A DNA stretch of 64,000 bases from Oikopleura dioica (taxonomy: Eukaryota; Animalia; Chordata): NCBI GenBank assembly GCA_907165135.1, contig OU015568.1, positions 9,920,001 to 9,984,000 of the forward strand, read 5' to 3'. A program made the translations under genes and the position numbers. Positions 28,891 through 41,520 of the stretch are shown piece after piece (the first letter of the stretch is position 1; each line of letters opens with the position of its first letter). The notes under the pieces were generated by a model. That model saw only the letters and a program-made list of their open reading frames with translations, did not search any database and was not told the origin of the DNA.

Positions 28891-29598
28891 TTATCCTCTC
28901 TTATTTCCTCTTCCAGCACATGAGAAGTTGCGGAGATCTCCATTCATTCGGCGAACAAAATTGTTCTTGCACTTGACTCGACCTTCAGCAGATGTGGTTC
29001 CATCAGCGCAGGTAATTCTGTAAGTCGAGTGCTTTCGTCCATCATCAATGCACTCAAATGATGCACCAGCCCAAGCGGCCTCGCTCATCAAAGTTGTCAT
29101 ACCGTTTTGGCACTTGCAACTGCCGGAAATGTCTCCGCATGGGCTAGGCCATTCCGGGAAGGTGGTGGAAAGAGGTCTTTTCTTCAGTCGTTTGCATCGA
29201 TCTGAAATTGAAGAAAGTTTGCAGAGTTTTATTATTGCCAAACTTACCAGTGTAGAGGACACTGACATCGCCACCTTGCTCAGCAGTTCGTGGGCAGGTC
29301 CACCAGATTCGGACATGGGCCCTTTGGACCTTCTGCTTGTTTGAAGGGAGGTTGGCGAGTTCAGTCGCAGTCATGTTGCAAACGCCGAAGGCATCGGGAG
29401 AGTTTCGGGGAGTATTGGTGCATCCACAGGGATCTGTCTCTCCATTCTTCCAGTGGAAGGGGTTGGATGCGCCGTTCTTCTTCTTTTTGTATCCAAAGTC
29501 GTCATACTCGTACTTAACAAGGTTCAAACGGCGATCCACGAGGAATGGTATCTTACCTGAGCAGCAACTGCTCCCAAAACAAAAAGTGCAAGCTTCAT
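28891..29598 (-). CDS. small secreted Cys-rich protein, 3 exons
   Basis: MKLALFVLGAVAAQ|YEYDDFGYKKKK...LYT|DRCKRLKKR...NFSCAGRGNKRG*, with two canonical introns and Cys modules resembling those on the protease at 20.2-21.2 kb. Confidence 0.8.
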
Positions 29599-29873: not shown

Positions 29874-31116
29874 TCAAGGTGGAAAATAATCTTCATATAG
29901 GTCACAGTAAATTAAACTATCTTCTTCTCTTGTCTGGAGAGTAAAATCTCCAAGCAAAATTTTCAGCTTGTTGGGTCCAAAGAACTTTCCATCAACCAGC
30001 GGTCCATCATCTTGCTCCAGAACGCAGCCGAACTGAGCATTCAAGAGCCAAGCCCAAGGAGCTCTGAATACGTATGAAGATTACTGTCTTGAATAATTCT
30101 AGCTACCTATTGTGGGAACATGCGTTTTCGAAGTAGCCGCATCCTGGTTGTCTTACTCCGCCATTAACGATCAGATTTGATTTACCTACTTGCAAGGACT
30201 GTACCAATCCATTATGAAACAAGTAGCCAGAATTGGTGATGACGGTGAGTACATGATCAGCATCCTGAGTTGACAATCGATGATGGTCGTCACACGTTTG
30301 GAAAAGCGGTCCAGCTGGGTCCAAGCCCGATATTTTTGAGATCTTGATTCCAGTAGCGGCGAAGAATTCTTTCCCGGTAAAACCGGCTATATGCGCGCCC
30401 AATGAATGACCGATAATTTGGATAGAGGATGGATCAAATATTTGGTTATGCTTTTGGATGGTTTCAGAAAGCCAGAAGCCAAGAGATCGTACTTTCTTCG
30501 CGGAGGCTATGTAGTTGTACTGCGCGATTTCATCCCAGTCCATGGAGAAAAAACACCATCCCTCGTTTTCCGTCTCATTAAAAAACGTCACGGCTGTGTA
30601 GGCAAGCCAATCTGTATTGTAAGCATCTCCGTATCCGTGAATGCCGATAAGTGTTCCAATACTGCAATTTTGTTCATCGTTGTATTGCTCTGGAAAGTTG
30701 AGTAATGTAAGGTTCGATCCGCCGTCGTAAAATTTTAACGAAGCAGTCAAATCCACATCGTGGGTTTCTAGGTTTAGGCAGTGGTAGTTCAGGAATGATA
30801 CGACTAAGATATTTTTTATAAAAAATAAAATGTAAATTTCTTACAGAATATTGCAAGAAATGCGCCGACGAAGGTAAATACGCATGATATTATTATTATG
30901 ATCTTCCTGTGTTTTGAAAATTGCTTTCCCAGAGTCAATATGTATCTTTTGCACATATTTTCTTCACTTTTTCTTTCTCCTCTTTCCTCATCACTTTGGG
31001 AACTGTTCAATGTTCAATGAATTTTATATGGATATAAAGCTTTATCGCGATGTATTTAAATTAAATTGGACTTTCCTAGGACTCAGCAGCGGCATATTAA
31101 CGTCGTTCTCATCCAT
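29874..31116 (-). CDS. pancreatic-lipase/phospholipase A1-family hydrolase with N-terminal transmembrane anchor
   Basis: GHSLGAH, GLDPAGP, CSHNR triad; TM IIIIISCVFTFVGAFLAIFFV. First exon MDENDVNMPLLSP joined through GA-AG intron 31003-31075. Short lid, no PLAT domain; stop 29874-29876. Confidence 0.85.
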
Positions 31117-31682: not shown

Positions 31683-34600
31683 TTAGCCTTGTCGACCTTG
31701 TCGACCTTTTCTCCCTTTTCTTCGATTTGGATTATTAATGAACTAAAAAATGTCACATCATTCATTATTTACTGAATTTCTTCTTACGCATTCCGAGTTG
31801 TGCTGATGTCGCCATCCGTTTTTCGTGCACTCGAGCGTTGGAGGTTGCGCTGGAGCACCTTTGGGCGATAAAGCAAAGTAACCCTTTTTGCACAAGAAAT
31901 GAATCTTTTCCCCAATCTTGTGTACTCGATTGCTTCTGCTTCTGTTCTTGCTCTTTCCAAACATTCTACTGTTAGGAACATCTGGCACATCATGCGCGTG
32001 ACAGCCTCGCATGCAAGATTTGACATTTCGGTTGCTCCAGAAGCCGGATTTTTCACATGTCGCAGTATACAGACGGTCTGGGTTTTTCATCTTGAAGCCT
32101 TCTTTGCAACGGAAGATGATTTTGTCTCCAGCTTTGAATCGATCAGCAGAGGTGTCCAGAGCAACCTCATCTTTTCCGATAAGCTTCATTCATATTGAGA
32201 TTAGCTGCAGGAAACATCAATTACCTGATACTGCAGAGAGTTTGGGAGTTCATTTGGCCTGTGGCAAACAGAAGAACAGCTAAAATCAGCCTTTGTCCAA
32301 GTACCATCCTCTTGGCATCGAATAGTTGGATTACCAACAGGTTTAATGTTGAAATTCAAGCATGCGAAGGCGACTACTGTGCCGACTCCAAGATCCTCGC
32401 CAAACGACTTTTCGGAGTTTTTAATAGAATTCTATTCTCAAGAATCTGAAACTAGTTATTTTTGATTATCAAAAACTCGTAACAAAGGTTTCGCATCAAG
32501 AACCGAAGGGAGTGGATCACATGCTTTAACACATGAAAAGCTAATGGGTGTGAATTCTCCATCAGTTTCGCATGTGATGGACCTTTCCCCGACGAGAACT
32601 GTGCCTTCTGGGCATTCAAAAGTGACGCTTTCCTTGAGTGCAAAAGCATGTTTATTCGAAGTTTGAGCCACTGCTCCGGCTGGCCACGTATCTTGTTGCG
32701 GCAGAGCGCATTCTAATGCTGGCGCCTGGCAGATGTAAGAGAAGGTCAAATCGCACTCCATGTTCATGATAGCATTGCGCATCACTAGAACTCCGCAATC
32801 TCGCTCTGCAGCATCGTCAGTCATGCTACGGGAATCAGTTCGCGGCCACCCCTTCGCCCAACGAACATCTTTGTTCCCGGCGCCATCGCTCCAAGTCCAG
32901 TTTCCTGAATTAAAATGTCAAAATAAAACGACTCAGATCAATATTAGTAATATTATATTACCATTATCAAGACGTTCAAGACCAATCCAAATCTCATTTT
33001 TGAGCCTGAGTCGATCAACGACCGTTCCATAGATTGGACATTCTTGAATCAATTTTGCACCGTAGCGGTGGCAAACTGACTTAGCCTTGTGGTAAGTTGA
33101 CTGTTCGTTGAAATATTTGAAGCATTCGTCTCCGATTGGTGACCAACCATGAGGACAGCTCACACTGAAAAACTTGAAATACTGATTTTAAAGTATTCTC
33201 AAACCTAGAAGATGACGATGAGCTTGAAATATCTTCACATAAAACTGGTGCTTCCGGTATTTCTGCTCTTTCCATACTCGCAGATTTCTCGCAAGAGAAA
33301 CCATCCCCATGAAATCCTTCGAAGCACGTGCATGTAAATTTTCCATCGTAGTTCTTGCACGCAGCGTTATCATCACACGGGGAAAGTGCGCATTCGTCGA
33401 TATCTTCACAGCTTCCCGCGTTGAGTCTGAATCCATCAAGGCAGTAACATTCATAACTTCCAATCGAATTCTTGCATTCGCTCTCGCCGCAATATCCACT
33501 ATCGGCGCACTCGTCAATATCGACGCAAGTCTTTCCATCTTCGGCCAAAGTGAATCCTTCAGCGCAAGCGCAAATGTAGGAGCCAACAGTGTCCACACAT
33601 TTTTGCGAGCATTTGTGCAAATCGGTCTTACATTCATCGATGTTTATACAATTACCTTCTTCATTCTTTTCGTAGCCTTGATTGCAAGCACACTCGTAAC
33701 TGCCAATACCATTGACACAGCTGCTGTCTTTGACGCAAAGAGAAGAGTCTACATCTTGGAGACATTCGTCAATATCAGCGCACTCGTTATTGTTGACAAC
33801 ACCGAAGCCAACATTGCATTCGCACCGATAGCCCCCAACAAAATTCACGCAGAGGTCTGGGCAGACATCGTTTTCGCACTCATCAATGTCAACACATTTT
33901 CCCGATTCCATCGAGAAACCCTCAGCACAAGCGCACTCAAATGAGCCTTCCGTCTCAACGCATGTTTGATGAGTTCCAAAACAGATGGCTTTGCCACTTT
34001 GAGTCATTCTCTCATCACATTCTGGGAAGTCTACACAAACACCTTCAGATTCAAAATCCAAGGGCGCATTCGCAATTGAATCCGCCTGTTTCTTCTATGC
34101 AAATCTTCAGAGTTCAAAATTATCAATTCAATAAGTGATTAAATTTGAAATTATATTTTAAACTCTGCCTGATTTTCCCCGCAAGGATTCGTTTCGCATT
34201 CTTTGATGTCATTGCAGACAACGCCATCACCTTTAAATCCCTCTTTGCACTCGCAGTCGTAGTCCCCATCTGTGTTCAGGCAAACTGCATGTTCGTGACA
34301 CTTGTTCTCGCTCAGGCACTCGTCAATATCAATACAGGAGTTGTCATCTTCTGGGGCATAACCATTTTCACACTCACAGAAAAACCTTCCTTCTGCATTT
34401 TCACAGATTTGGTTATTTCCGCAGGTAGATTCTCCAGTTGCACATTCGTCGACATCGACACAGTTTTGCTCATCATCAGAAAGCGCAAAGCCCTCAAGAC
34501 AGAAACATTCATACGATCCAGAAGAGTTACTACACTCGACATCTTCTGCACATACTCCGACCGTACACTCATCGATATCAGAACATGTGAAGCCGTCGCC

Positions 34601-37600
34601 TTCGAAGCCTTCACTACACTCGCATTCGAACGTTCCTACTGAGTTTTTACACTCGGCATTTGCGTCACAAGGGTTGGTTGAGCATTCATCATTATCTTCG
34701 CACTGTCCAAGAACCTCTGTGAAGCCAAGATTGCAGTCACAGACGAAACTGCCTTCATTGTTGACGCAGAAACTATTTGATTTTTTGCTGCAAACATCTT
34801 CATCGGCACATTCATCTACATCGAGGCAATCTTCACTATTCTCCGACTTAGCGTACCCATCAAGACAGGAACAACTGAAGCTACCGTCAAAGTTTCGGCA
34901 AACAGAATTCTCTCCACATGGATCATTCTCACATTCATCAATGTCTCGGCATTCTTCATCATCATCTTCTCTTATGAAACCGTCCGCGCAGTTGCAAGAA
35001 TAGCTTCCATCGCTATCGACACAAACCTCATTAGCATCACATGGAGATCTAAATAAGAGTTCAAAGACTGTCAGAGAACTATCCAGGAAATGATTTTTTA
35101 GAACTCTTGGCTAAAGAAATTCGAGTTTTCACAATTCTCCCGATCCGAGAATTTTACATACCGTGCGCATTCATCGATATTTTCGCAGCCATTTTCGCCG
35201 ATTTCGAATCCGCCTAAGCATGAGCATTCGTAAGATCCGATAACGTTTATGCATTCCGTGTTTTCCCCACAGTCAACCGTCGCGCAGTCGTCAATGTCAG
35301 CGCAGGTCTTTCCATCGCCTTCAAATCCTTGGTCACACATGCAAATAAAGCTGCCCATTTTGTTAAAGCAGCTTGCGTGGGGATCACAGGGCGAAGTTGC
35401 GCACTCATCGACATCTTCGCACATTCCGTCAGAAGCGCGGCGGAATCCGGAGCTGCAGTCGCAAGAAAAGCTGCCGACGGTATTTTTACAATCGGCAAAA
35501 AGATTGCATGGGTCATCAAGGCACTCATCTACATCAACACAGTCATTTGCATCGCCTTCAGTAAAGCCATCGTTGCACTCGCAGATGAAAGATCCTTCAG
35601 TATCGATGCAATGTGCATTTGGAGGACAAGCATCAGTCAAACACTCGTTAATATTTACACAATTTTTGCCATTCTCGTCAGCAAAACCAACCAAACAAGG
35701 ACATTCGAAGCCTCCAATAGTATTGACGCATCTTGAGTTGTCTCTGCAATTATCGTCTCCGACACTGCATTCATCCACGTCAACACATTCATCAAGGTCA
35801 GTGTAATCAAAACCATCAGGGCATTCACACCTGTAAGAGCCCACAATATTGAGGCAGACTTCGTTAGTTCCACAGATGTGTTCACCAGAGGCACATTCGT
35901 CAATATCCTCGCACATGAATCCGTCGCCCTCATATCCCCACTCACAGGTGCAGCTGAAAGATCCGTTTTCATTTTGGCAGCTCGCATTTGCATGGCATTT
36001 GTTTTCGACGGCGCACTCATCAATATCTGAACACGAAATTCCGTCGCCTTCATAACCGCCTTGGCAGGAACAAGAAAAACTTCCCTTCGAATTTGAGCAA
36101 TTTGCATTCTCGCTGCAATTATTTTTGTCCTCGTCAGCACATTCGTTCACATCCGTGCATTTACCATCAATTAACTCAAATCCAGCTTTGCATTCACAGT
36201 CAAAACCGCCATCACTGTTGATGCAATTTGAGTTTGGTCCGAGTCTTCTGGAACAGATTTTTGGTCCTTCTCGTGAGCACTCATCAATATCCTCACAGGG
36301 GCAAGATCCAGAACCCTCTTCATCAGAGTTGTCGTCGCATACTTTTTCATACCCATGCTCACATTTGCATTTGAATGAACCAGGGCTGTTCAAGCAGATT
36401 TCGTGTTCCGCACAAGGCTCCTCTGCACATTCATCGATATCATCACATCCGTGCTCTTCAACTGTGTAACCGACCGGGCAGACACATTCAGCGAATCCAA
36501 CATGATCAACGCAAATTTGGCTTCCAGCGCATTTGTATTGTTCAAGAAGGCACTCGTCGATTTCGATACAGTTTCCAAGGTCATCATACTCGTAGCCAGC
36601 ATCACAGACGCATTCAAATGATCCAATCGTGTTTTGGCAGTTTTCATGTCGGCACATGCATGTACCAACAAGCGCGCATTCATCAATATCCTAAAAAAAT
36701 TGACGACTCAATCTACGATAACAAATACCTGACAGTTCTTTCCATCTTCACTCGAGTAGCCAGAATGACATGTGCAGGTTGGTTCAAAGCCGATATTGTT
36801 AAGGCAGTCAGAGTTCACACCACAGTAAGGCTCGTCAAACGCGCACTCGTCGACGTCAAGACAGTGAAAGAAGTCTTTCTCCAAATCTTGCTCGTAAAAC
36901 TCATCGCACTCACAGACGTAGCTTCCAGGAATATTTTCGCAGCTCGCGTTGTCTCCACAAATGCCAGCAGCGCATTCGTCTATGTCTTCACAAGTGCGGC
37001 CGTCGGATTGAAGAGCGTAGCCAGAGTTGCAGGAGCAGGAGTAGCTGCCGATTGTGTTCTCGCAAATGTGATCGCAGTCATTTTCACCAGCGCACTCATC
37101 GACATCAGCACATTTTCCATTGTTTTTAGCATAACCAACATGACACTGACACCAATAGTTTCCAATAAGATTGATACAATTAGATTTGACATCACATCGA
37201 TCATACCCTAGTTCGCATTCATCGATATCAGAGCAGGTTGGTGAGGAATGATCAAAACCGGATTTTTTCACGCAGCGCGCACCAGATTCGAAATTGTAGC
37301 AAGACTCACATGACTGGCAAGAGAGGTTGTCGCAAGGATTTCGATCACATGTGTCATTTTCTGCCTTTGCACCGTCTTCACAGATGCAGGAAAAGTCTGA
37401 TCCTTTACCAACACAGGTTGAGCCTTCGATTGATGAGCAAGGATTTCCGGAACATGGGTCGAATGGAAGACAAGTGGGGGGACCATTTTTGTTATTTTGA
37501 CAAGTGGAGTTTTCGTCGCAAATACCAAGCACACTGCAAAGGTCAACAACGTGACATTCTCCATTATAGAAGATCTCGTTCATGTTGCATGCTGTGGCAC

Positions 37601-38263
37601 AGCTTTCTTCGCCAATGATTATTGGAGTTTCACCTCTATTTTCAACGTCAGGCTCGAGTTCATCTTCAAGAATGACGGTAGCGTCACCAGAGCTTTCGTC
37701 CAAGGCATCTTCGCTTATTTCAACAACTGGAACGTCGTCTGAACCAGATGACTCCATCATCATTCCAGAGCCTTCAATTATCATGTCCAACGGATCAAAC
37801 TGTCCAGAAGACTCTTGTACTGAAACCTATGGCAAATGTTTCGAATAAATTTTAGTAAAGCTCTTTACCTCAAGATTAATATTGTTGATGATTTCTACTT
37901 GTCCAGTTATCGCAGAATATATTTCGCACTTGTATATTCCCTCATCAATAGCTAGAAAATATTTGAAGGCGAATATTTCTTTTTCTGCTTACCTGATGCA
38001 TCAGAGAGGGTTAGATCAGCTGATCCAGGAACGAGGCTGACTTTGACTCTCTCAACAAGTGGGGATGATCGTACAAGTTTGACTCGCTCTTCAAGCCTCT
38101 TTGCGATCCGAGCATCAGACTGGTACCACTCTACTACAGGCGACACTGCATCAGCAGGAATTTGGCAAGGAAGCGTGACCGTCCCTCCCTCATCGACTCT
38201 TATTCTCGTGACTTCTTCATTCGAGAGAACGCCCTGCGCCAAAAACGCGGCGAGCAACTTCAT
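31683..38263 (-). CDS. giant extracellular protein: signal, Ig V-set, acidic Ser-Gly region, ~34 EGF/cbEGF, C-type lectin, 4 Sushi, basic tail (lectican-like layout without Link domains)
   Basis: VTLPC...VEWY...DLTLSDAS|ASDEGIYKC; ESSG/EGSG motifs; repeated D(I/V)DEC; CPHGWSPIGDECFKYF...WIGL...WTWSDG...DCG...MECD...YICQ; four C...C...W...C Sushi repeats; last exon FINNPNRRKGRKGRQGRQG*. Confidence 0.9.
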
Positions 38264-39174
38264 CTCTCGGTGAAAAAATCTGTAAGAAGATGAAAGAGAT
38301 TTTGACAACCCAGAATCAACCGCACGAGTTCATCCGCTCTTGAAATAACAGGAAAGTTTTCTTTGCAATCTACATCGGAAAACGCCGGCTTTTTGAAAAC
38401 AGATTACGAATGTGATTTTCTGTTGATTGGAATTTGACCGGTTTGCCAGAAATCAAAGTCATAATTCTACATGGCGGAAATGACTAACCATCTAAAGTTG
38501 ATAATTAAATGATCATTAAAAATTATTAGTAATGGACACAAGTCTGTGACCTTCGGAGAACAATAAACCAATTGATTTCTGGATCAATCATTATCCGGAG
38601 TAAAGCTGACCTCGTAAAAATTGTAATCTAATGAAACCCTGCCAAAATGATGAGCGTCATCGGAATTGACGTCCAAATTTAAAACGCCTTTACGTTCTGT
38701 AATTGCGTAAATCTCCGCGCTGATATCATCGCTTTTTTATGGCTTTATAAATACTCGAGACGCCACCAGCTGATTGGTAAAACTCAAGGACGAAATCAAA
38801 CATTGTTAACTTCTTTCATAATTCAAGAGAGAATAAAAGAAACAAAAACGGAGAAAATGGCTCAAAGAAGTTCTCAGGAAGGTTTTTTCGACGTTGAACT
38901 CAATGAATGAGAAACCGATATTAATTCTTGCTGTAAAAACCCGGTCATTGAATTTATTCAGAGGGTTTGTATTTTTATTCCGGAGTTAACTAGGGTTTTT
39001 GAGTATTCGCCCGCTGGGCATCGTATGTCGTCCACGTTTTAAACAGTGAATTGATCGAGAAAGCTGAGGAATTTCTTCCTCGGAAATCCCACCAGATCCT
39101 TAATCTATCTCCGTTCTACACCTTTTCTTTTTTTGCCTTTTTTATTCCTTCAAAATTCCAAGAGAACAAGCAAA

Positions 39175-41520
39175 ATGGGAGAGAAGTCGAAAAAATCGAA
39201 AAAGTTGAAAATGGCGAATATGCGCATACAACTACAAGCAAATGAGCTCTTTGACAAAGGAGAGTATCAGAAAGCACTAGAAAAGGTCAGTTTGAGATTT
39301 GAGGGTGATTTGACATTTACAAGGAAATTGACTTCACAAGTCGTAGATTTGCATTTTTCAACGTTTTCCAAGATGTTTTGGACAAGCTATTATTAGCCTC
39401 AATTTACGGGGGTTCTTGTTGACACCGGCGTAATTATCTAGATATCAAGCTCATAAACTCTTATCCGATTTTTATCATTAAATAAAATCTTCAGCTCGAT
39501 GAGATCGCTCCCGCCAACTGGATGGGAATTCATTTCTTCAATCAATCTCGATTTCATTTGAAAAATTCAAACAAAGATGGCGCCATCGAGTCGCTCAGAA
39601 CTTTCGTGAACAAAGACAAAACATCCGCCATTGGATTCTTTCATCTTGCCACGCTGCTTTATCAACAAGGACAGTACAACGAGGCGGAGAAGAACTATGA
39701 AAAGGCATTCGATAGTTTGAGAGGGAACGAACTGGTGGATTACCGACCTCTGCAACTGGCTGTTACGCTAAGGGTGTCAGATGTGGCTTACAACCTTGCA
39801 GTCGCCGCGGTCAGGTAACTTTCTAACCAGTAATCCTTTTTCGAAAAGTGTTCTTGCTTGAAAACGCGGAAGGTTTTAAGAAAATGCTAACATAGAACAA
39901 TTTTTCGACAACTAGACAACTTTGAGGATAACAAAGCGGTAATTTTATGAGTCTAGACATAAAATTTATTCACCAAATTGAATCTCCCTTGAGAGAATAA
40001 AGCTACGGTTTATGAAATAAAAAAGAGTCGTTTCTTTGGATAATCTGGCTCGATCTCTGCGCATTTGTGGTTGACCAAAATAACAGCGCGTTTAGCCGTG
40101 ACAAGTGCTCATTAATCAGTTTCCTCAACGACTTCTCTTTAAGAAACGGCAGTTCCGAAAACTTTGTGAAATTCATCGAAATCGCCCTTGAAAACGCCGA
40201 AGAAATCGAGCGACATCGCGACATTCGCCACCTTGAAGCTCTGCGGGAATCGCCGTTAAATCAAATACCATTGACGAAATTCCCATTAATTGAAATTTCG
40301 CCATTTGCGGTTTTCCGTGTTTCGCAAAAGGTGAAGGCAAGTTTGAATTCGAATCCGATAAAGAAGGCGACTGCCAAGGCTGTTGGTGGAGATGGTGAAG
40401 CGGGATTTACTCCGGTCGCAGCGCCAGTGATTCCCAAACATTTTCGCGCCTCGGATATGACGGAGGCCCCCTTATCAGGTACGATAAAAATATTCACCAG
40501 GGAGCTTTACCAGGGATTCTCAGCAATATCACTTTTCAGCTTTATAAACTGATTTTAAGCTAAGCTACAAAGCGTGGCACGAAAAGAAACGGAGCGATCA
40601 ATTAGCAAAGGTCGATCAACCTCTCCGTCAATTTCGGCGCTGCTCGCTCAATCTGGAATCACTTTACCGGGCGTAGACGCTGCTGGTCGCCGAGCTGGTA
40701 TTACAGGAGCGGCGGGAATGAATTCGAGCCCCGCCCCGCCATCCCGGCCGCCTCCCCTAGCTCGGGAAAATTCTAGAGGCTCCAGTGGAGGAAAGCCTTC
40801 ACCAAAACTCTCTCCAAAGAGTTCAAAGCTCGAATCGAGTTCACCCGTGACGAAATCAGCGAAATCCCTGGATTCAAGAGGCTCAAGTACTCAAAAACTC
40901 GACAAAGAAGCAAAGAAAACAACGCTTATGAATAATACTGTAGCTGACGGCAGTCCACTGGCGCGGAAAGAAGAGCTCAAAGCGCCGAGTGTTAAAAGTG
41001 TCAAGTCAGATAAAAGCAAGAAATCAAAGAAATCTTCTTCAAAGACGAAATTGTCCGATGAAAAATCAGCTCCGTTTCCGGAAGGCTCGGGCGATCAAAA
41101 AATTCAATGTAACGACAAAAAAGATGAGAAGCGATTGGAAGTCAAGATTCCACCAGAAAGGTAAAACGATTTCACTTGGATTTTCTACTGATCATCTTCT
41201 TATAGCAACGGTCTGAACGAAAGGGTGAGGCTTTGTGTCAATGTCCAGCTTGATCTCGACCTTGAGGTCGACCGAAATATCGACTTAGACTCGATTATGC
41301 TAAGAATAAGAGACAGAATTCACAGCATGGCTTCTGTTGTTAGTTCCAATTCAACATCTCCTTGCTTATTACACAATGGTAAATACAATTGCATAATGCA
41401 ATTGCATAATTATTATGAAACTGAAGGTAATTTTGATTCTTAGATGAACCCGTAACGGATGAAGAACAGTTCAAGAAGACGCTCCAAGACACAAATGCTG
41501 TAAATTTAAAGCTCAAATGA
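39175..41520 (+). CDS. p67phox/NOXA1/NoxR-like NADPH oxidase activator homolog (TPR + activation-domain region + Pro-rich + PB1-like; no SH3)
   Basis: NKDKTSAIGFFHLATLLYQQGQYNEAEKNYEKAFDSLRGNELVDYRPLQL...DVAYNLA matches remembered NCF2 NRDKHLAVAYFQRGMLYYQ...LRGNQLIDYKILGL...EVLYNIA. VFR...KKATAKAVGGDGEAGFTP follows; stop 41518-41520. Confidence 0.8.

Follow-up and report, generated by a model that had tools for sequence, protein, structure and literature searches.

A larvacean mosaic gene of EGF, C-type lectin-like and Sushi modules with lectican-like ends and, probably, no lectican ancestor

Lecticans have been described as a vertebrate novelty (Root et al., bioRxiv 10.1101/2020.09.24.311837), and a gene outside the vertebrates whose two ends are arranged like theirs raises the question of whether it descends from the same founder or was put together separately. 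Such a gene lies on the minus strand of a 64,000-nucleotide stretch of Oikopleura dioica DNA (contig OU015568.1, positions 9,920,001 to 9,984,000; hereafter the window, to which all coordinates refer unless another contig is named). A sequence-only reading had offered two accounts of it, namely that it is a tunicate relative of the ancestor of lecticans or that it was assembled convergently, and had further attached to it a relevance for the origin of cartilage and perineuronal matrix. Tunicate, and more precisely larvacean, the gene is; of the two accounts, the evidence presented here favours the convergent one. With a probability of about 0.72, we consider that the locus is one functional gene, specific to appendicularians, whose product is a secreted mosaic matrix protein, and that it arose by domain shuffling and not from a lectican ancestor. 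The likeness of its ends to those of lecticans most likely came about when common matrix modules were reshuffled independently, and not by common descent, and lectican homology is not supported by the sequence comparisons or by the structural model described below. Mosaics of calcium-binding EGF (cbEGF) and CLECT modules, with or without CCP modules, have been recorded before, both in the Oikopleura house and in amphioxus (Hosp et al. 2012, PMC3390340, text and Table S4); what is new here is a larvacean-specific, well-conserved member of these known matrix mosaics, which combine cbEGF modules with C-type lectin-like domains (CTLDs) and Sushi domains.

One conserved gene in eleven exons

The gene model was obtained by translating the minus strand in three frames from 38800 to 31000, where long Cys-rich open segments form a chain, and by seeking frame-compatible introns between neighbouring open segments, the junctions being read as well. 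The resulting gene runs from 38263 to 31683 (ATG at 38263, TAA stop codon ending at 31683), which is exactly the interval that had been proposed from the letters alone. It comprises 11 exons with compatible phases at all junctions: E1 (38263-37993), E2 (37951-37869), E3 (37826-36729), E4 (36690-35162), E5 (35048-34169), E6 (34104-33205), E7 (33164-32962), E8 (32904-32477), E9 (32431-32225), E10 (32183-31788) and E11 (31742-31683), all on the minus strand, as are the features described below. The introns measure, in order, 41, 42, 38, 113, 64, 40, 57, 45, 41 and 45 nt, nine of the ten being of the GT-AG type and one GC-AG. The genes of the window are in general split by GT-AG introns of ~40-60 nt, as is characteristic of Oikopleura dioica. 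Summing the exon pieces gives a predicted product of ~2,019 residues and ~218 kDa. A Pfam domain scan, run separately on each exon, and the reading of the sequence bear out the domain order first proposed (signal peptide, Ig domain, acidic Ser-Gly segment, EGF array, CTLD, four Sushi domains and basic tail), and the same two approaches found no TB, Link, transmembrane or further domain types in the gene.

Orthologous stretches were found by exon-level searches of a large protein collection, after which the corresponding environmental contigs, representing at least two other Oikopleura lineages, were fetched. Between them, five contigs cover both ends of the gene: L005 (ENA) carries E1, E2, E3 and the start of E4 at 89-97% amino-acid identity (96.7% for E1), L003 (Logan) the end of E1 to E4 at 65-88%, L004 (ENA) E2-E3 at ~62%, L002 (ENA) E7 to the start of E10 at 68-78%, and L001 (a 19 kb contig from JGI) the end of E6 to the stop codon, plus a downstream lipase gene, at 70-81%. 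In all five, the exon order is collinear with the window. The ratio of nonsynonymous to synonymous substitution (dN/dS, Nei-Gojobori) is 0.05-0.10 per exon; in comparisons with the more distant lineages, synonymous sites are close to saturation or past it. Because the exon order, the Ser-Gly sites and the basic tail are conserved, and given these dN/dS values, we read the locus, from its sequence, as one functional gene. No close paralogue of E8 was found in the genome. Beyond Oikopleura, no orthologue was found among 1.84 billion representative proteins searched with the CTLD of L002, and the single-exon word-index searches returned orthologous fragments from Oikopleura-type environmental contigs only.

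A division of the locus into two genes, one with the Ig domain and the other with the EGF-CTLD part, was considered and rejected. E2 ends on a splice donor without a stop codon and E3 has neither a start codon nor a signal peptide of its own; additionally, the order and spacing of E1-E2-E3-E4 are kept in L005, and the parts covered by L003 and L004 are kept there as well. We conclude that the Ig exons and the EGF-CTLD part form one gene.

The two ends and the rod between them

The protein begins with a start codon and a 14-residue signal peptide (MKLLAAFLAQGVLS; 38222..38263), read from the sequence and with a presumed cleavage; from this signal peptide-like start, together with the lack of a membrane anchor, we infer that the protein is secreted. 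The V-like Ig domain that follows (37869..38221) is split by a 41-nt phase-1 intron (37992-37952) into parts encoded by E1 and E2. Its Pfam scores on E1 alone are weak (22.6 bits for I-set and 18.7 for V-set, with Ig_2 and Ig_3 also matching), since the F and G strands are encoded in E2. The Cys pair is separated by 65 residues, and both a WYQ motif and DEGIYKC (of the DxGxYxC form) are present, while sequence matches in the PDB, over residues 8-75, are to Robo2, VCBP3 and an antibody VL, the VL alignment spanning the whole E1 part. Based on the Cys spacing, the two motifs and the VL matches, a V-set-like assignment appears reasonable. The motif DEGxYxCEIYSA in E2 is kept across four lineages.

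The first 75 residues of E3 (37602..37826) form an acidic segment (22 D/E residues for one K/R) with four candidate sites for the attachment of glycosaminoglycan (GAG) chains, namely the Ser-Gly pairs in ESSGQ, EGSG, ESSGSDD and DESSGD. All four, as well as DPLD and VILEDELE, are invariant across the window, L005, L003 and L004 (at least three lineages), although the identity of the segment is otherwise only 50-54% with respect to the two most distant of the four compared sequences. Such invariance within a diverged segment is expected if the serines are modified, for instance as xylosylation sites for GAGs, and does not amount to proof of it. The suggestion of a proteoglycan, made when only the letters had been seen, thus gains some support and is plausible, with GAG addition itself being a prediction from the sequence.

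The bulk of the protein is an array of ~33-34 EGF modules, of which ~30 would bind calcium (33285..37601, E3-E6, without TB domains). The region contains 203 Cys residues (hence the module count), 30 occurrences of CxCxxG[FYW] and 31 of D/N-x-D/N-E-C; Pfam places EGF_CA stretches in E3 (4), E4 (12), E5 (7) and E6 (6), and cEGF and EGF_3 match too. In the single-exon word-index protein searches, the closest outside matches to the EGF exons are fibulins, EFEMP1, hemicentin and fibrillin fragments, with 33-45% identity. As in fibulins/EFEMP1, hemicentin and fibrillin/LTBP, a long tandem cbEGF array would be expected to act as a Ca2+-stabilised rod-like spacer. Nevertheless, fibrillin and LTBP have TB (8-Cys) and hybrid domains, whereas the Oikopleura exons give no match to TB (PF00683); fibulins have a fibulin-type C-terminal module, whereas these exons give no match to PF22914 and the C-terminus is CTLD-Sushi x4. 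The anaphylatoxin, VWA and G2F domains of cbEGF matrix proteins were likewise not found in the exons by Pfam, the ends here being Ig and CTLD-Sushi. Between the last EGF module and the CTLD there is a linker (SASMERAEIPEAPVLCEDISSSSSSS; 33205..33284) with one lone Cys and a run of seven Ser (SSSSSSS), which, judged by its composition, could be an O-glycosylated hinge; in L001, identity over the end of E6 is 70%.

The CTLD (32726..33164) is of the long form and is split between E7 and E8 by a 57-nt phase-1 intron (32961-32905). Pfam matches UL45 and Lectin_C halves on the two exons, and a scan of the Oikopleura genome gave Lectin_C at 30.8 bits across the intron. The domain has CPHGW...C, WIGL, W-W-DG and C...C...FxC, in keeping with a long-form CTLD, which is marked by the C0-C0' hairpin disulfide, the WIGL motif and the C1-C4 and C2-C3 cysteines. 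Its Ca2+ site 2, however, departs from the canonical one: in an alignment with canonical CTLDs, EPN/QPD is replaced by WPR, the Glu ahead of the third Cys by R (RDC for E-x-C), and WND by [MI]NM, in all three Oikopleura sequences that cover the domain. With four of the five ligands of the site gone, Ca2+-dependent sugar binding seems unlikely.

To describe the fold, the window CTLD was represented by an uninterrupted natural open reading frame (ORF) of a related lineage, L002:68-481, in which an in-frame, stop-free intron adds ~15 residues. This intron (L002:269-316) is the one that splits the CTLD, which is why the called ORF has those ~15 spurious residues midway through the domain. The AlphaFold2 (AF2) model of this orthologous CTLD, built on a 25-row alignment, has a predicted local distance difference test (pLDDT) value of 79 and a predicted template-modelling score (pTM) of 0.76; its sole poor stretch (residues 67-82, with pLDDT <50) consists of exactly the intron-encoded residues. 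Foldseek retrieved many CTLDs with template-modelling (TM) scores of 0.68-0.78 and 17-23% identity to the model, which thus indicates a generic long-form CTLD fold.

Four Sushi/CCP domains follow (31788..32710; individually 32710-32531, 32521-32276, 32266-32013 and 32003-31788), with their four-Cys patterns and with Pfam matches on E8 (one), E9 (one) and E10 (two); introns fall within Sushi 2 and Sushi 3. Their top sequence matches in the PDB are CR1, CR2 and factor H; the number of repeats inflates these scores. The last exon (31683..31742) encodes a polybasic tail (FINNPNRRKGRKGRQGRQG) and the stop codon, read from the sequence, without a hydrophobic end of the transmembrane or GPI type. The L001 orthologue also ends in a basic tail (FRNSRNKQKGRRNGRNG) and a stop, and an intron at the same position precedes it.

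Taken as a whole, the protein is best read as a rod-like cross-linker of the matrix that is specific to this lineage and is possibly a part-time proteoglycan. If they behave like the arrays of fibrillin and fibulins, the ~30 tandem cbEGF modules would form a Ca2+-stiffened rod of ~90-100 nm, keeping two unlike binding ends apart. At the N-terminal end, next to the V-like Ig domain, the four Ser-Gly sites of the acidic segment would probably bear GAG chains; at the other, the CTLD-Sushi head may bind a partner that, with the Ca2+/sugar site lost from the CTLD, is probably a protein. For the polybasic tail, candidate ligands are sulfated glycans and the acidic, GAG-bearing end of another molecule; binding of the latter would let molecules join head to tail into networks. 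The protein may in this way act both to space and to cross-link an extracellular matrix, be it that of the body or that of the secreted house.

Lectican ancestry and the other explanations

The protein and the lecticans share a number of traits: both are of a secreted type, with an N-terminal V-type Ig domain, an acidic Ser-Gly segment after the N-terminal globule, and EGF, CTLD, Sushi and a short tail at the C-terminus, and the long-form CTLD modelled here superposes on that of aggrecan. They also differ in several respects. The lectican G1 region consists of a V-type Ig domain and two hyaluronan-binding Link modules, and only the Ig domain is present here. The GAG region of lecticans is hundreds of residues long and bears many chains of chondroitin or keratan sulfate, whereas the candidate segment in Oikopleura has 75 acidic-segment residues and four sites. 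The EGF-CTLD-Sushi order of the lectican G3 region is found, with ~33 EGF modules and four Sushi domains where lecticans have one or two and one, respectively. Link modules, whose absence had already been noticed in the initial reading, are indeed missing: Xlink has no match in any exon and, with the threshold relaxed to E<=1, none anywhere in the 64.3 Mb genome, in a six-frame scan that had no positive control and is to that extent good but not final evidence. The same method returned at least 147 Lectin_C matches. Lecticans can also be linked to HAPLN genes; with no Xlink match in that scan, no HAPLN neighbour was found here, the adjacent genes being a lipase and a TPR gene. Link proteins have been reported in Ciona (PMC12383584), so that their absence here would be a loss in this lineage.

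The affinities of the CTLD point elsewhere. When the L002 CTLD was compared with the 1.84 billion representative proteins (E<=0.001), 91 matches were obtained, one of them an orthologous fragment with 75% identity and all the others with 35% or less. Every long match has several matched stretches, as in a multi-CTLD protein, and none of the 91 is a long single-CTLD protein of the lectican or selectin kind. The ten best outside matches (from octocoral, amphioxus, crinoid, hemichordate, oyster, brachiopod, limpet and krill, with 24-35% identity) are, where named, called "mannose receptor", "DEC-205-like" or uncharacterised; of the six among these ten that were scanned with Pfam, five have multiple CTLDs and one gave no family match. 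These invertebrate multi-CTLD proteins are thus the nearest sequence relatives of the CTLD, with scores that derive in part from summed repeats. They differ from the Oikopleura protein in having 4-12 CTLDs combined with pentraxin, F5/8C, LCCL or kringle domains, and in lacking the cbEGF rod, the Ig domain and the Sushi block. Searches of PDB sequences with each CTLD half and with the whole domain ranked MRC2, DEC-205, PLA2R, CEL-I, NKG2D and snaclecs (snake-venom lectins) at the top, and no lectican or selectin appeared among the best 60 matches. Selectins share with the Oikopleura protein one CTLD together with EGF and a Sushi run, but their order is CTLD-EGF-Sushi, they are anchored by a transmembrane segment and their Ca2+/sugar site is canonical, whereas the Oikopleura protein is EGF-CTLD-Sushi, anchorless and without that site. 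The matches of the Ig domain (Robo2, VCBP3, antibody V) and of the Sushi domains (CR1, CR2, factor H) are generic, with nothing lectican-specific in them.

Some observations weigh against the reading that we prefer. By fold, the aggrecan CTLD (1tdq_B) is the third match to the model (TM 0.74/0.80, 19% identity), in a near-tie with SRCL, CD23, CEL-I, MGL, mannose-receptor CRD4 and antifreeze proteins, and the order Ig ... EGF-CTLD-Sushi-short tail mirrors the ends of lecticans; a distant common ancestry of the C-terminal block with lecticans is therefore conceivable on the evidence given here. An apparent extra T at 34053 would, if real and combined with the upstream acceptor of E6, truncate the protein ahead of the CTLD.

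If the gene were a true relative in the lectican lineage, a pre-vertebrate Ig-(Link)-spacer-EGF-CTLD-Sushi gene would have lost its Link modules, as part of a genome-wide loss, and expanded its EGF and Sushi modules. The alike order of the end modules, the short basic tail, the Ser-Gly sites placed after the Ig domain as in lecticans and the rank of aggrecan among the structural matches all speak for this, and a secondary loss of Link is conceivable, with Xlink absent genome-wide while Ciona has Link proteins. We nevertheless judge such a history very improbable. The CTLD has no sequence affinity for lecticans, its structural match to aggrecan is tied with those of unrelated groups at 19% identity, its Ca2+ site residues are replaced (WPR and [MI]NM) although lecticans, whose CTLDs form group I, need them to bind ligands such as tenascins and fibulins, and the numbers of EGF and Sushi modules are far from those of lecticans. 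Additionally, the Ig domain fits generic V/I-set domains, no orthologue was found beyond Oikopleura among the 1.84 billion proteins searched, and the vertebrate-novelty view cited above speaks against it. Exon boundaries are out of step with module boundaries, a mismatch that might be counted against lectican ancestry as well; larvacean introns are, however, known for their turnover, which makes intron positions uninformative on this matter. Independent assembly is, in turn, economical, since EGF arrays are many in the genome and CTLD matches number at least 147. A stronger version, in which the pre-vertebrate lectican-founder gene has this one surviving descendant among invertebrates and the Link modules of that descendant disappeared along with all larvacean Link genes, is just as improbable; were it true, the origin of the proteoglycans of cartilage and perineuronal nets could be traced outside vertebrates. 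On the present evidence, the gene has no bearing on that origin, contrary to what had been suggested for it.

The remaining alternatives concern what the gene does and whether it is intact. It may encode a larvacean house component of the oikosin type, secreted by the oikoplastic epithelium, and we regard this as a tentative possibility. The house proteins Oik19, Oik42 and Oik43 come from the same organism group and are secreted mosaics with EGF_CA, CLECT and CCP modules, and house inflation requires proteoglycan sulfation (both from Hosp et al. 2012, PMC3390340); the present protein is likewise of a secreted type, has conserved Ser-Gly sites and is restricted to Oikopleura. However, Table S4 of that paper has no oikosin of ~218 kDa with cbEGF similarity, and the masses (153, 93 and 158 kDa for oikosins 19, 42 and 43) and descriptions do not fit a 218 kDa Ig-EGF33-CTLD-CCP4 protein. 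Moreover, the primers of the Oik43 probe have no match in the window and the gene does not contain the peptides that the Oik42 and Oik43 primers encode, these being weak tests given the high DNA divergence between the lineages. An immune role, with the CTLD and Sushi domains recognising microbes or regulating complement as in a humoral pattern-recognition or complement-regulator-like protein, is improbable. CTLD and CCP modules are typical of innate immunity proteins, the Sushi domains have their best matches in CR1, CR2 and factor H, and the CTLD family is greatly expanded in the genome; on the other hand, the CTLD is devoid of Ca2+/sugar-binding residues, the Sushi scores are inflated by repeat number, the ~30-cbEGF rod and the acidic Ser-Gly segment are matrix features, and a single-copy gene under strong purifying selection is not a fast-diversifying family.

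That the gene is a broken copy is a proposal that turns on the start of E6. The intron between E5 and E6 (34105..34168, 64 nt, GCAGAG...CTGAAG) is the GC-AG one, the sole non-GT intron of the gene, and past it a four-T run (34053..34056), with the apparent extra T at 34053, shifts the frame within one otherwise perfect cbEGF. With the acceptor at 34105, E6 starts with a perfect cbEGF half (ICIEETGGFNCECALGF) whose frame meets a TGA at 34054-34052, and owing to the four-T run the continuing frame of E6 (ESEGVCVDFPEC) is one frame off. If the extra T were real, the protein would end after ~27 EGF modules, without CTLD, Sushi domains or tail. Against this, a homopolymer would be a typical place for an assembly indel, and an alternative acceptor at 34095 (giving a 74-nt intron) leaves the frame open, although the affected EGF module then keeps 3 Cys. 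The downstream exons are all open, and from the end of E6 through E10 dN/dS is 0.06-0.10 with respect to other lineages. Given these open frames and the constraint on the exons that orthologues cover, an assembly error in the homopolymer is most likely, and is preferred over both the alternative acceptor and the broken copy, the latter being hardly probable. A DNA search of the same genome for a second copy of the frameshift region found the region itself only. No orthologous contig was found across the four-T run, a metagenome scan with E5 having given only paralogue-level EGF arrays with 45% identity or less over long stretches.

Wider meaning and local observations

For a secreted cross-linker assembled within the larvaceans, the reading that we retain, the main lesson is that ends like those of lecticans (an Ig domain on one side, EGF-CTLD-Sushi followed by a short tail on the other, and Ser-Gly sites between them) can be built from common modules in a non-vertebrate, and it carries the caution that matches in domain order should not be read as ancestry. 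A gene that is well conserved, single-copy and restricted to larvaceans is also a tractable candidate for studies of matrix and house assembly in Oikopleura; of note in this respect are its ~30-module cbEGF rod, its invariant candidate GAG sites and a CTLD that gave up its sugar site.

Some observations were made around the gene and in its relatives. Several CTLD matches elsewhere in the genome sit in very long multi-CTLD frames, such as a 1,934-residue ORF at C1:6981684-6987080. A 6/7 match to one of the primer-encoded peptides lies at 29479, outside the gene, and was taken as chance. On the upstream side, a TPR-repeat gene (39051-39818, plus strand) begins ~800 nt from the matrix gene in a divergent arrangement; directly downstream there is a pancreatic-type lipase gene (30103-30756, minus strand; Pfam Lipase, 105 bits), which is also present in L001 (L001:2749-3351), so that local synteny is kept. 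Finally, the 45-nt intron within Sushi 2 (32476-32432) is absent from L001, where the frame runs through (L001:543-1133, compared with 32225-32904 of the window) and Sushi 2 is ~8 residues shorter, which indicates variation in intron presence and absence between Oikopleura lineages.

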